Of a stretch of DNA of 64,000 bases, positions 22,224 to 26,610 are shown in pieces; position 1 is the first letter of the stretch; each line of letters begins with the position of its first letter. A program made the translations under genes and the position numbers. A model generated the notes under the pieces. It did not search any database. It was given only the letters and a program-made list of their open reading frames with translations, and was not told the DNA's origin. The DNA lies in sequence record MW021758.1; one strand, given 5' to 3'.

Positions 22224-22844
22224 TTAAAGACGCTCTTTCATTACTGAAGTCGGATCGATTCCGTCTGCGATGCAGTCGTCAATAATATCCCAGGTAGCCA
22301 GGATATCCATCTGCTCTTCCAGAGAGATAGTACCCGCACCAGGAACAGAACAACCGCCAAACGTATATTCGCTCCACCATTCACCTTTCTCGTTCTTCGT
22401 TGCCAGACCATTGGTCGCTGCACGATAGAAGAGATCTTCATAGCCTTTACCTTCCAGATCCCACTGACCGGGTTTACTACCCCAAGCATCAATGGACTGG
22501 GTATCATAACGACTACGGATGAATGGGTGCGCCAGAATCCAACGACGCATGGTCATCGGTGCTGTGGCAATTTCCGTCTGATCATCCAAGAACTGGATAA
22601 CGTCATCACGGAACAGCCCGCGTTTAACCCGGCCCAGAATACGTAGCGAGTTACGCACCGTATCGTCATACATGGATTCAATCAACCCACGAGTACGCTC
22701 CAGACCTTCCCTTGCCCGAGAAGACAACCCACGACTGAATTCTTCCAGACGAGAATATGTCCGCTCTACGGAGTCACGATCAGGCATCCCGAACGCAGCC
22801 GCTCGGAACGATCGCTCATCTCCGCTAACTATAGAAATTTTCAA
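22224..22844 (-). CDS. Core hypothetical protein
   Basis: 206 aa; TTG start directly after the exon-2 stop, with AGGAGG RBS. Confidence 0.7.
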   Translation of the reverse strand: MKISIVSGDERSFRAAAFGMPDRDSVERTYSRLEEFSRGLSSRAREGLERTRGLIESMYDDTVRNSLRILGRVKRGLFRDDVIQFLDDQTEIATAPMTMRRWILAHPFIRSRYDTQSIDAWGSKPGQWDLEGKGYEDLFYRAATNGLATKNEKGEWWSEYTFGGCSVPGAGTISLEEQMDILATWDIIDDCIADGIDPTSVMKERL

Positions 22845-23018
22845 TTACTTCCTCCTGTGAAGGTAGTTGTTTATCGTAGCCCTTACCGGAGCACCCAACG
22901 CCATATTGTTGTTCAAGGCGTGTGGTTTGTTCAGGTCGAATGTACCCGTGTGAGGTGCTAATTTGCGCACACGATGATAATCCGCCTTACTCAGGATAGG
23001 CATCCCGCCCAACATGTC
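22845..23018 (-). CDS. Exon 2 of the nvRNAP beta'-N subunit (DMLGGMPILSKADYHRVRKLAPHTGTFDLNKPHALNNNMALGAPVRATINNYLHRRK*)
   Basis: Open 57-codon frame starting with the GAC that completes NCDFDG-D; stop abuts the next gene; absent from the ORF track. Confidence 0.85.
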   Translation of the reverse strand, partial: DMLGGMPILSKADYHRVRKLAPHTGTFDLNKPHALNNNMALGAPVRATINNYLHRRK

Positions 23019-23314
23019 CCTCGGCTAAATGCACCGAGTACTTAACAGACTATATCTTCACTTGATTCTTTCAAGTGCTCCCCGTTTCGGGTTTTCCCTA
23101 CTCTACTCACTACGTTTACCACATCCGTGTTACGTGCTTTCGATAGTCGTTGAACCTTCTCCATTTTACAGGAGCTTGGATGCTGATTGTCTCTATTAGA
23201 TTGTTTTCAAGCATTCACGCTTACCGTTTCCGGTTACGTTGTAGCCAATCTACCTAGCAAGAGTTCCCAGCAGTTAAAGGAGTTTTAAGACGGCAACTTA
23301 GTTGGGTTACTTCT
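23019..23314 (-). mobile_element. Group I self-splicing intron (IA-like), 296 nt, no homing endonuclease ORF
   Basis: P AACUGCUGGGAA (23264-23275), Q AAUCAGCAUC (23179-23188), R GUUCAACGACUA (23144-23155), S AAGAUAUAGUCU (23047-23058); P1 GACGGU/GCCGUC with U.G at the 5' splice site; P9 CUCGG/CCGAG followed by the terminal G. Confidence 0.9.
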
Positions 23315-24592
23315 ACCGTCGAAGTCACAGTTCGGTGCCTTCAGCACTAGCAGCGATAGGCCGATAGTATTGTCGTGCACGTCCCTTTTGATTTTGGTGA
23401 CAAACAGGTTCTGAATCGAACGTAAGTTCAACGTTGGATTTCGACCCAGCAACTGAGGCAGACCACGTTTACCGCTAATTGTCGTAAACGGAGATTCGTC
23501 AATCAGCTCATCCAGCAGTGTGGAGATCAGCGGATTATAACGCCCTACCGAAGAGATCAGTAGATCCTCAGAGTCTTGGATGGTGAATCCGCGACGAACT
23601 AACTTTCCGATCAAGTGGGTGTGATAAACACCTAACGCAATCCCCCACGGCATATGCATTTCTTCATAGTCGTGAGATCCCGCGATAGACGTTACTACGC
23701 CACGATAAGTTGGCCCGGTACGAGATCCATAGATCTGTTTACGGAACCAGCCTTCTTTCTTACCCAGGATGTTCTTGTCGATATATTCCCGATACTTCAC
23801 CAACATCATCAGTGCTCGGAATACGTGATATTCCTTAGTCACTTGATAACGCGGTTCATCTTTACCGACCAAGCTATAAATAGCTCGTGCAGCATCGACA
23901 ACATCTGCATAGCCTTCAGCACAGAAGCGAGTTTTGTTACTAAGCTCCGTGATGATAGACCGGCGAGATGGCAGCGGGAGGACGGTTGGGAACAGGAGAT
24001 CCCTGAACTTATCGAAATACACCAACGCATCGTTACGGTTAGCGGATGGCTTGAATATCTTACTATCTACCATCGCTCCCAGGATGTCATCGAAGTTCTC
24101 GATAAAGTGATTATAGCCACGAGGGATGTTCAGTTCTTTGAACCGACGGAACGTGGCACTGGTATCGTTGGTTGGCTTATATTTGGTGTTACAGAGCCAT
24201 TCAATTGCCGAGAAGTTCTCCTGGGTGAAGTTCTTCAGCAACATGACCAACGCATTGATACGGATGAACGCACGAACACCGTTAGGTGCTCTCAGCCACA
24301 CAGAAGATTTAAACCCTCGATCGATTGGGCTCATCACTTCAGTCTGACATTTCGGACATACCGTGTTAGGGATACTTGGGTCGTTCGATGAATTATACCG
24401 ACCATGGGTGTGGCCACACTCACACGCCGGTAATGTCTCAATGAAGTCGTCGCTATATTCGGTCATGGTCAGTTCTTTGACTGGATCAGTACCTTCATAA
24501 TGCGCCGGGTCGATATCATTGAGGATAATTGGAGGACGAGGCAGAGCTGCGATATCCCTGTCATAGTCCGGATTTAACAGATAAACACCCAA
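23315..24592 (-). CDS. Exon 1 of the nvRNAP catalytic beta'-N subunit (phiKZ gp55-like)
   Basis: Zn finger CECG..CPKC, RNPTLNLRSIQ, ends in APNCDFDG; predicted spliced product 483 aa. Confidence 0.9.
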
Positions 24593-24693
24593 TTACTTTC
24601 CCCTCTTTTCTGAAAAGATAGAAAAAAAGAAAGGAGGCAAACGCCCCCTTTCTCACCCTTACGGGAGTACTTCAATTACTTCCGAACTATTAC

Positions 24694-26526
24694 TTAGAAG
24701 TAATCGTTGCGACCAGTACCACGCATACGGAACGCTTTGCCGGCGTAACCGGAAGTAGCGTACTGAGATTGGAAACCACGACGGAAACGAGTATCCTGAT
24801 AGATACCGTCAGCCTGAGTAACCATACCAGCGCGCTCGGCGGCGTTGGTCAGAGTGAACAGCCACTGGGTGTTAACCAGTACTGGAACACCGTGACCGGT
24901 GATGCGATAGGAACCGCCGGTGAATTGGTCGATGATCTCTTCCATTTTCGCCAGACGGATTTCGATCGGCAGGCTTACATCGTTCTGGCAACGATCCCAG
25001 TCTTCTACGATGCGACGATCTTTCTGGCCGAAGGCAGTCAGGATCGCGTAGTAGTCGATTTCGGTCAGAGAACGGATTTGGCCACGGTCGTCAGTCCATT
25101 CGCCCAGCAGGACGATACGGTCTTGACGTTCGCCGATATCCAGCGGGTTGATACGCGCTGCGCCCAGGCTTTCCATGAAGGCGCCTTTGGTCAGGTTATC
25201 AGCCGCTTGTACCAGCATGTCTGCGAACAGGTCGCGGTTCGGGTTCATGCGGTCGGTCGCTTGCAGCAGCAGTTTCTGCTGTTGGGTGGTGATGCCGGTT
25301 TCGTCGATCAGTACGGTTACGAAGTTCTGATCCGGTTGGATCACTACGTCGGTCAGGTCAGCCCACTCTGCATCGTCCAGAACGTCCGGCACTGCTTCGA
25401 ACTCTTCGTCCAGCTCGTAGGTCAGAGCAACCGGAGTACGCAGTTTCGCGTTGTCGCCGGCTGGCTTCAGACCAGTGGTCAGAACGTTTTCGTTGATCAG
25501 TACAGGGATCTGGGCCAGTGCCAGGCACAGGTGCTCAGGAGAAGCTTCGTGCTTCATGTGGGTGATGACCAGGTTTTTACCGTAGATCTGACGCGCTGCG
25601 TCTTCTTCACGCTGAGAACGGTAGCGAGAACGACGTTGCTGACCATCCGGACGACCCAGGAACAGCAGATCAACGTAACCTTCGATGGTTGCGATGTCCA
25701 TTGCGCCTTCAGCGTTTTCCAGTGCGTTAGACACACGGTTACGCTGACCTTTGGTTGCCAGAGATACTTCGACGGCCAGATCGCGACGACGAGGACGCTC
25801 GGTGATTTCGTCATGGGCATCGCCCTGATTGTAGATCACGCGAGAAACGAACTCGCTGCGCTGAGAGTCGATCGCATCGGTCAGAGAGAAGTGTTCGGTA
25901 CGCAGCATGTTGCCCAGGTAACCGAAGACGGAGTTCACCGCGGAGATGATCAGGTCTTCACACTTCGCTTCGCTCAGTTGCGCGTTGGTTACTGCCACGG
26001 CGCCCATCAGAACGATGTTTTCAGCTTCGCCCATGTAAGGCGCTTTGCGATTGATGATTTCGGTCAGCTTTTTCTGATACGCTTCAGTGAACTGATCGTT
26101 CGCGACGGCAGAGTACTGACGCTCGTTACGGTTGCTGATCTCTACGACTTGCTTCGGCAGAGGCTGGCCGCCGGTGAACAGCAGAGTCAGTGCAGTGGTG
26201 ATCACGCCTTCGGAGGTAGTGGCTTTACCGACAACGACAGCTGCATCCAGCTTCATTTTGGTTTCGCCAGAAGATGCTGGGATTACGGCCCAGGTCAGTT
26301 GACCGCCGGCAGACAGAGCAGCTTTGTTTGCGTCGTGATAAGCGTTGAAGCGCTCGATGAAAGTGGTCAGTTCGTTACCGGAAACGCCGGCTTGTACCAG
26401 TTGGCCGCTTTCGAAGATGTTGGTGTTCAGACGACGGCCTGCTTGTTCGCGAGGTTGTTGACCCTGTGCAGCTGCAGCGCGTTGGGTGTTTTTAGCTTCG
26501 TTAACGTTTTGGTCAGACAGACTCAT
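24694..26526 (-). CDS. chmA: Chimallin, the major phage nuclear shell protein
   Basis: 610 aa directly upstream of the beta'-N subunit, strongly biased codon usage, N- and C-terminal extensions; start moved to ATG 26526 after AAGGAG; called by synteny and size. Confidence 0.8.
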   Translation of the reverse strand: MSLSDQNVNEAKNTQRAAAAQGQQPREQAGRRLNTNIFESGQLVQAGVSGNELTTFIERFNAYHDANKAALSAGGQLTWAVIPASSGETKMKLDAAVVVGKATTSEGVITTALTLLFTGGQPLPKQVVEISNRNERQYSAVANDQFTEAYQKKLTEIINRKAPYMGEAENIVLMGAVAVTNAQLSEAKCEDLIISAVNSVFGYLGNMLRTEHFSLTDAIDSQRSEFVSRVIYNQGDAHDEITERPRRRDLAVEVSLATKGQRNRVSNALENAEGAMDIATIEGYVDLLFLGRPDGQQRRSRYRSQREEDAARQIYGKNLVITHMKHEASPEHLCLALAQIPVLINENVLTTGLKPAGDNAKLRTPVALTYELDEEFEAVPDVLDDAEWADLTDVVIQPDQNFVTVLIDETGITTQQQKLLLQATDRMNPNRDLFADMLVQAADNLTKGAFMESLGAARINPLDIGERQDRIVLLGEWTDDRGQIRSLTEIDYYAILTAFGQKDRRIVEDWDRCQNDVSLPIEIRLAKMEEIIDQFTGGSYRITGHGVPVLVNTQWLFTLTNAAERAGMVTQADGIYQDTRFRRGFQSQYATSGYAGKAFRMRGTGRNDYF

Positions 26527-26610
26527 TGTTTTGCTCCTTAAAAGCATTGTTTATTGTTTCATTGCAATGAAAGTAATTAGTTGAAGAACAAACATCTTTG
26601 TTTATCTTCA

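Follow-up and report, generated by a model that had tools for sequence, protein, structure and literature searches.

Group I introns in the non-virion RNA polymerase (nvRNAP) genes of phiKZ-like phages are already on record: those of phiKZ gp55, taken together with gp56, are treated in two papers (PMC11512511, PMC10914365) that cite Mesyanzhinov 2002 and Ceyssens 2014, and the corresponding chain in the Protein Data Bank (PDB), named 'PHIKZ055...PHIKZ056.1', is an exon fusion that reads DFDG-D-QLNL; the initial annotation of the DNA studied here was thus correct in treating such introns as known. Structural work on the phiKZ enzyme assigns coordination of the catalytic Mg2+ to DFDGD and places the strand that follows in the double-psi beta-barrel (PMC8287921). 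For intron-based phage competition and protection, the framework is the PhiPA3 gp210 intron (Birkholz et al. 2024; PMC11620839), whereas T4 nrdB, with its deleted I-TevIII, and Bastillevirinae offer nuclease-free introns in the catalytic motifs of essential genes (PMC2988022, PMC11878797). Here we describe a 296-nucleotide (nt) group I intron with no endonuclease open reading frame (ORF), located at 23019..23314 on the minus strand of a 64-kb stretch of MW021758 (the window; window coordinate = record coordinate minus 124000), which interrupts the nvRNAP beta'-N subunit gene of Serratia phage vB_SmaM_Yaphecito. Yaphecito belongs to Moabitevirus moabite and is a phiKZ-like, nucleus-forming jumbo phage, in which the genes of the intron region lie on the minus strand; window positions 22400..24700 match its sequence at 100% identity. 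Our literature search returned nothing on this intron, and neither the Moabite genome announcement nor the paper on phages Kodama and Totoro (PMC10070969) mentions one. We consider it about 85% probable that the element can splice and is a member, without endonuclease, of a mobile intron lineage; it is placed between the Gly and last Asp codons of DFDGD.

Relative to the described systems, the Yaphecito intron shares with phiKZ gp55/gp56/gp56.1 the same gene, the synteny with the shell protein gene, the interruption of the catalytic loop and the intron type, and its core can be aligned with the phiKZ type at ~60% identity (the phiKZ-type intron of phage fnug scores 74.8 bits with Rfam). The phiKZ site, however, follows the last Asp codon, GAT (DFDGD^Q), and is 3 nt downstream of the Yaphecito site, which follows GGT (DFDG^D), so the Yaphecito intron does not share its position with the gp55/gp56 intron, as an orthologue would; moreover, the phiKZ type carries a 366-residue HNH ORF and the Yaphecito intron none. 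In PhiPA3, too, a group I intron interrupts a chimallivirus RNA polymerase gene beside conserved catalytic aspartates (PMC11620839), but both gene and site are others, the gene being that of the virion polymerase beta subunit (gp211/209). PhiPA3 gp210, a member of the HNH nicking endonuclease family, is a weak tblastn match of the ORF in the intron of phage Totoro (see below), and because the PhiPA3 intron encodes a nuclease and that of Yaphecito does not, Yaphecito stands only on the defended and not on the attacking side. The T4 nrdB and Bastillevirinae introns are patchily distributed among close relatives, as is that of Yaphecito, but they reside in other host genes; Moabitevirus differs from them in holding intron-plus, intron-minus and endonuclease-bearing states within one genus, together with a sharply delimited exon patch. 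The Yaphecito intron is therefore an ordinary relative of introns known in this phiKZ-like gene; what is missing from the databases is the intron feature itself.

A complete group I intron within the DFDGD-coding sequence

The upstream ORF (23285..24592, minus strand) terminates in ...APNCDFDG-RSNPTKLPS, its in-frame TAA stop (23285..23287) falling nine codons into the intron and ending unspliced translation just past the guide sequence. Exon 1 proper (23315..24592, minus strand) comprises 426 codons and ends in ...APNCDFDG, whereas exon 2 (22845..23018, minus strand) comprises 57 codons, DMLGGMPILS...HRRK, followed by a TAA (22845..22847) that is directly abutted by the TTG start of the next gene. 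Joining of the exons at GGU^...G^GAC gives DFDG-DMLGGMPILS... and a 483-residue product, and removal of the intron as proposed in the initial annotation, with restoration of DFDGD and addition of the 57-residue exon, reproduces exactly an allele that exists: Moabite has an uninterrupted 483-residue coding sequence (CDS) equal to exon 1 (426 residues) plus exon 2 (57 residues), with nothing added or missing. The exon 1 protein is identical to residues 1-426 of the Moabite CDS and exon 2 is 100% identical to its end; Haymo and Pectobacterium phage vB_ParM-25 carry the same fusion as a single 483-residue CDS. The boundaries 23314..23019 are fixed by the U.G wobble of P1 together with the uninterrupted Moabite allele. 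More distant homologues, among them those of Klebsiella FBKp24-like phages, PhiEaH1, PCH45, SPLA10, RTH11 and Eowyn, are also contiguous across DFDGD.

The identity of the interrupted gene was obtained from a search of the PDB, as the Pfam search of the exon products and both neighbouring genes gave no hits. The best phmmer match of exon 1 is 7ogp_A, phiKZ gp55 (E = 7e-56), with an alignment that extends exactly to DFDG, and exon 2 matches residues 457-496 of gp55 in the same chain. By homology, then, the gene is that of the nvRNAP beta'-N subunit, the phiKZ gp55 homologue, in agreement with the polymerase assignment made from the sequence at the outset. Exon 2 provides the third catalytic Asp and the strand after DFDGD, so unspliced RNA would yield a subunit lacking both.

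An Infernal-type comparison with the Rfam group I model, which the initial annotation had suggested, placed a match to RF00028 (Intron_gpI) at 23029..23338 on the minus strand (58.8 bits against a gathering score of 50 bits; E = 2.3e-12) that covers model positions 1-253 of 253. All of the elements listed in the initial annotation are found on the minus strand at the coordinates given there. The last six bases of exon 1, GACGGU (23315..23320), can pair as P1 with the internal guide sequence GCCGUC (23289..23294; intron nt 21-26), setting the splice-site U at 23315 in the U.G wobble; position 23315 is C in the intron-less alleles and U in Yaphecito. Just 5' of the guide sequence, GUU (23295..23297) can form a P10 of 3 bp with the exon-2 GAC. 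P3 pairs CUCCUU (23277..23282) with GGGGAG (23078..23083), as seen in the minimum free energy (MFE) fold and in pair counts, and P4 pairs UGCUGG (23267..23272; element P) with UCAGCA (23181..23186; element Q). P7 is formed by GACUA (23144..23148), within element R (GUUCAACGACUA), and UAGUC (23048..23052), within element S (AAGAUAUAGUC). P8 is the hairpin CACUUGA-AAGAA-UCAAGUG (23059..23077), and the sequence and fold give a P9 hairpin CUCGGU/GCCGAG with the terminal (omega) G at 23019 (23019..23038), only 27 nt separating P7' from the 3' splice site.

Pair counts were made over eight aligned introns, namely those of Yaphecito, Kodama, Totoro, PS119XW, LucasX and the Staphylococcus phage Romulus and the two of fnug. 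P4 and P7 are invariant, P4 being paired in all eight, while standard pairing persists in P3, P5, P5a, P5b, P5c, P6 and P8 although two to four pair types occur at each position, many of the changes being double; each of the six P3 pairs occurs as 2-3 standard pair types, as do six of the seven pairs of P8. Furthermore, P7 of the intron in Erwinia phage pEa_SNUABM_54 reads GGCCA/UGGUC, a compensatory change relative to GACUA/UAGUC, and P10 covaries with the first exon-2 codon (GAC-GUU in Yaphecito, GAUAUG-UAUAUU in Totoro). Between P7 and P3' the Yaphecito intron has a 60-nt insertion, P7.1/P7.2, an arrangement that in Michel and Westhof's scheme belongs to the subgroup IA phage introns. Judged by sequence, model match and covariation, the element 23314..23019 is a group I intron with a complete core. 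The Rfam placement of P1/P2 and P9 was rejected, because it sets P1 within exon 1 and leaves P9 a 1-nt loop.

In keeping with the claim that the intron encodes no endonuclease, its internal ORFs are only 40 and 56 residues long and have no Pfam hit; at 296 nt, the intron has no room for a homing endonuclease gene. The HNH protein of Totoro, used as a query, gave no tblastn hit in the window, blastn of the intron found no second copy there, and the Rfam scan of the whole window at E <= 0.1 returned no second intron or other RNA family. At the scale of the whole record, blastn of the intron matched two places in MW021758, the second lying outside the window; the Yaphecito genome may thus hold another related intron.

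Presence and absence among close relatives

The intron is polymorphic among close relatives. Yaphecito, Kodama, BUCT660 and 2050HW carry the 296-nt form at DFDG^D without an endonuclease ORF, whereas Moabite, Haymo and vB_ParM-25 have an empty site, the absence being precise, and the four intron-plus and three intron-minus isolates are ~99% identical. The 296-nt copies vary at five sites in all, the Yaphecito copy differing from each of the others at 4-5 positions, and the change at each of the five either falls in a loop or exchanges one standard pair for another (C-G to U.G, U.G to U-A); in the seven-genome alignment the differences among the four isolates are located in the P8 loop. The intron-plus isolates, which come from the USA, Germany and China, are all plaque-forming, an indirect sign that the intron is active.

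The exons next to the insertion site carry a second signature. Between Yaphecito and Moabite, which are 99.6% identical, there are 108 substitutions in ~26,000 aligned positions; 11 of these cluster at the site, no more than 31 nt upstream or 12 nt downstream of it, and all 11 are synonymous; against the background of 0.37%, 11 substitutions in 43 nt have a Poisson P of 4e-17, or ~1e-12 when corrected for position. Across the seven genomes, ten synonymous sites within these 43 nt separate the four intron-plus from the three intron-minus isolates perfectly: six in the upstream exon patch (23315..23345, minus strand; positions 23345, 23342, 23339, 23321, 23318 and 23315) and four in the downstream patch (23007..23016, minus strand; positions 23016, 23012, 23010 and 23007). 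Polymorphisms elsewhere in the gene do not track intron status; BUCT660 (plus) and vB_ParM-25 (minus), for example, have the upstream haplotype in common. The variants nearest the junction, TTC GAC GGT upstream and ...TTG GGC downstream, are common to Yaphecito and Totoro. Endonuclease-initiated homing from a donor ~20% divergent would be expected to leave just such a co-conversion tract.

Related introns in other phages

At the same DFDG^D site, Totoro has a 1410-nt intron with a 319-residue HNH_3 + NUMOD1 ORF (I-HmuI-like), and pEa_SNUABM_54 a 1376-nt intron (L018:2091..3466) with a 334-residue HNH ORF. As far as our searches show, both are unpublished as introns. Their guide sequences are near-identical (GCUGUC, Totoro) or identical (GCCGUC, pEa_SNUABM_54) to that of Yaphecito, and both have the HNH ORF 3' of the core; in Totoro it sits in the 1143 nt after P7', at the position of P9 in Yaphecito. 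Nucleotides 7-267 of the Totoro intron are ~97% identical to nt 18-269 of the Yaphecito intron, except for a replaced P7.2 hairpin, although the surrounding 26 kb of these two phages of the same genus differs at ~20% of sites; the contrast between so similar a core and such divergent genomes suggests recent horizontal movement. Both insertions interrupt the gene at the Yaphecito position (GGT^GAC or GGT^GAT; GGT^GAC in pEa_SNUABM_54). The core of the pEa_SNUABM_54 intron is alignable end to end with that of Yaphecito, and its HNH protein is 30% identical to that of Totoro.

Other members of the family interrupt the gene nearby. The phiKZ-type site DFDGD^Q is occupied in fnug (phiKZ species) by a 1524-nt intron with a 366-residue HNH ORF (L004:1426..2949) and in PS119XW by a 362-nt intron without an endonuclease ORF (L006:1788..2149), and LucasX has a 411-nt intron, also without an endonuclease ORF, seven codons upstream at LKA^PNADFDGD (L005:1769..2179). 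The PS119XW and LucasX introns, which belong to phages of other genera, are unannotated and the gene is called there as fragments. These comparisons indicate that endonuclease-free introns in the nvRNAP catalytic loop are not unique to Yaphecito, and that the region coding for the loop is an insertion hot spot, with at least three points within 8 codons (LKA^PNADFDGD, DFDG^D and DFDGD^Q). In fnug, group I introns interrupt the gp55 homologue twice, and both contain an HNH ORF (Rfam, 87.5 and 74.8 bits), the first of them (L004:56..1299) lying at HRN^PTLQ in the conserved RNPTL motif and carrying a NUMOD4+HNH ORF.

Relatives of the ribozyme extend beyond this gene. The core of the Romulus recA-like gene intron is homologous to that of Yaphecito over P3-P8, but it differs in host gene, host phylum and peripheral elements and carries an intron-encoded endonuclease. 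At its gathering threshold Rfam misses both the Romulus and the pEa_SNUABM_54 introns, whose cores are apparent from pairwise alignment. A 51-nt block running from P6 through P7 into P7.1 (23138..23188, minus strand; L010:2501-2551) is 100% identical to introns of more than 50 Staphylococcus Herelleviridae (Twort-like) phages, and most of P5a-c is near-identical between Yaphecito and such introns, for example that of Romulus. Identity this high, without covariation in the helices, suggests that the ribozyme cores of phages with Gram-negative and Gram-positive hosts share fairly recent common ancestry. A search of IMG/VR for relatives returned only the three known isolates, and two metagenome scans, one with a P7.1 24-mer and one with the exon1/intron junction pattern, gave no matches; with no further relatives from these sources, no intermediates with a decayed endonuclease were found.

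Annotation of the locus and neighbouring genes

In MW021758, the exon 1 ORF is annotated as a 435-residue 'putative RpoBC' (gp148), exon 2 from its second codon (22845..23015, minus strand) as a separate 56-residue CDS 'RpoBC' (gp146), and a stretch inside the ribozyme (23042..23164, minus strand) as a 40-residue 'hypothetical protein' (gp147); GenBank holds no intron feature for the record. The initial annotation had called exon 2 unannotated, which, given gp146, is only partly true. In the Kodama record, by contrast, exon 2 is unannotated. A GAGG five bases 5' of the exon-2 ATG (window 23015..23023, minus strand), within the 3' arm of P9, resembles a ribosome-binding site and has probably misled gene callers. 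The beta'-N genes of Yaphecito, Kodama, BUCT660 and 2050HW are thus mis-annotated as a truncated CDS plus fragments and should be given as two exons of 483 codons in all; the annotations of Totoro, pEa_SNUABM_54, PS119XW and LucasX need the same kind of two-exon correction.

The upstream neighbour, a 617-residue ORF (24694..26547, minus strand), has no Pfam hit; its counterpart is annotated as the nuclear shell protein (chimallin) in the Moabite RefSeq record and in vB_ParM-25, and the synteny is that of phiKZ gp54-gp55.

Discussion

From the anatomy of the intron, we infer the following course of splicing. The pre-mRNA would fold so that the last six bases of exon 1 pair with the guide GCCGUC, with U.G at the cleavage site; exogenous guanosine would attack after U23315; the terminal G23019 would then occupy the G site in P7 and the exons would be ligated, yielding a 483-residue subunit with an intact Mg-binding Asp triad. 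As ligation is what restores the triad, splicing would be obligatory for the polymerase that serves middle and late genes in phiKZ-like phages. The lineage probably invades GGT^GAC by homing, with an I-HmuI-like HNH nickase of the kind encoded in the Totoro and pEa_SNUABM_54 introns, and the intron would have entered Moabitevirus moabite, or been exchanged within it, through endonuclease-type gene conversion, with donor exon carried along over ~31 nt upstream and at least 12 nt downstream. The intron would now persist as an endonuclease-less stage of the homing cycle, tolerated because splicing removes it and difficult to lose, since any imprecise deletion would disrupt DFDGD.

Several observations weigh against this account. 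In a long-read transcriptome of phiKZ, no splicing of the predicted phiKZ introns was seen under the conditions used (PMC10914365); splicing of the Yaphecito intron, predicted here from the DNA, may thus be non-trivial to detect. The exon patch could equally mark intron loss in Moabite, Haymo and vB_ParM-25 by recombination with a divergent intron-less phage, and polarising it with Totoro and Klebsiella-phage outgroups was uninformative, the outgroups being either saturated or intron-plus. At the ends of the Yaphecito intron, 17 nt (5') and 27 nt (3') are not alignable to the Totoro intron, so that simple deletion from the Totoro form does not account for the 296-nt form. The placement of P1 (GACGGU/GCCGUC) and P9 (CUCGGU/GCCGAG) comes from manual reading and comparisons, as the Rfam alignment misplaces both. 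Finally, the MFE z-score of the intron alone (-0.66) is not significant, which we take as evidence neither way.

That the intron is not spliced at all, the gene being either broken or expressed as two polypeptides of 435 residues (DFDG-RSNPTKLPS) and 56 residues (from the ATG at 23015) that assemble non-covalently, is in our judgement very improbable. The two separate CDSs in GenBank and the Shine-Dalgarno-like GAGG before the exon-2 ATG fit such an arrangement, and the beta and beta' subunits of jumbo phages are naturally split into several polypeptides (PMC7598289). However, neither polypeptide would contain the third Asp of the Mg2+-coordinating DFDGD (PMC8287921), the 296 nt form a complete, covariation-supported ribozyme whose precise removal recreates the allele of sister phages, the exon 2 protein is 100% conserved and in frame, and the GAGG falls within the 3' arm of P9. 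How the intron came to lack an endonuclease is a closer matter. The initial annotation offered a degenerate remnant as one option: the endonuclease module, and only that, is missing, whereas the core is intact and nearly the same as in the endonuclease-bearing copy of Totoro, which makes the term close to the mark but too strong. We lean, with some reserve, towards loss of the endonuclease gene rather than its never having been present in the 296-nt lineage, because the first half of the Yaphecito tail (AAGUACUCGGUG) aligns with the endonuclease-bearing intron of the Erwinia phage. The converse, that the 296-nt form is original, that an HNH gene invaded the P9 region independently in Totoro and that the Yaphecito copy has not yet been invaded, is a possible though less favoured history. 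It would explain a 3' tail that consists of a clean P9 hairpin, free of ORF remains, and cannot be aligned to the 1143-nt tail of Totoro, and it has parallels: PS119XW (362 nt, no ORF) against fnug (1524 nt) resembles a clean insertion, the fnug ORF lying in a P9.x hairpin between repeats of GACATGTC; intron subgroup and nuclease type have been reported to be decoupled, and nuclease-free phage introns to occur (PMC11878797); and for Pf-WMP3 the intron and the endonuclease gene have been proposed to have inserted independently (PMC3428280). Apart from the alignable half of the tail, this history has to accommodate the patch resembling co-conversion, which implies nuclease action at the site in the past of these very alleles, and the related HNH proteins at the identical site in two genera, which suggest a long association with the site.

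The other option in the initial annotation was a shield. On this reading, selection would maintain an intron without endonuclease: by dividing the sequence targeted by intron endonucleases of the Totoro or another type, it would make its carrier immune in co-infection without the cost of a nuclease. Such selection would add to the history of a spliced, endonuclease-less intron of mobile descent rather than exclude it, and the idea is already in the literature. The circumstances are suitable: Totoro has the cognate endonuclease-bearing intron at the same site, and Totoro and Kodama, one with and one without the endonuclease, were both obtained in July 2019 on a single host strain, S. marcescens LVF3 (PMC10070969), so both intron states co-occur in nature and co-infection is plausible. 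Moreover, an intron endonuclease confers a competitive advantage between PhiPA3 and phiKZ, acquisition of the intron being described as protective (PMC11620839), and I-PfoP3I spares its own intron-plus allele (PMC3428280). I-HmuI and I-HmuII, in contrast, cut intron-plus and intronless alleles alike, nicking in exon 2 (PMC3428280), and since the endonuclease of the relative Totoro is I-HmuI-like, protection at this site is not automatic. Three near-identical intron-less isolates persist, which argues that any selective pressure is not overwhelming; in the standard homing cycle, immunity in any case follows automatically once the site is occupied and needs no special selection; and the frequency check in metagenomes found no relatives. 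We therefore regard selection as a shield as a reasonable but unlikely explanation. Its fuller version, for which our expectation is lower again, would have Totoro armed, Yaphecito, Kodama, BUCT660 and 2050HW carrying a disarmed intron as selected, cost-free immunity, and Moabite, Haymo and vB_ParM-25 with a target recoded, by the ten clustered synonymous changes around the site, to resist cleavage. If this were true, the DFDGD-coding DNA would be an arms-race locus of co-infecting nucleus-forming phages and the intron an adaptive defence rather than a decaying parasite.

For the biology of these phages, the predicted splicing means that the middle and late transcription machinery would depend on an RNA-catalysed step. 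In a nucleus-forming phage, transcription is separated from translation, and such splicing may or may not precede export. The Yaphecito intron is of modest interest alone and more useful as one member of a natural three-state set: the Moabitevirus isolates comprise endonuclease-bearing, endonuclease-free and empty states in a tractable host, two of these states having been co-isolated. Such a set is suited to the study of intron-endonuclease conflict, and in particular to asking whether occupancy of the site by an intron or recoding of the target protects against an intron endonuclease.

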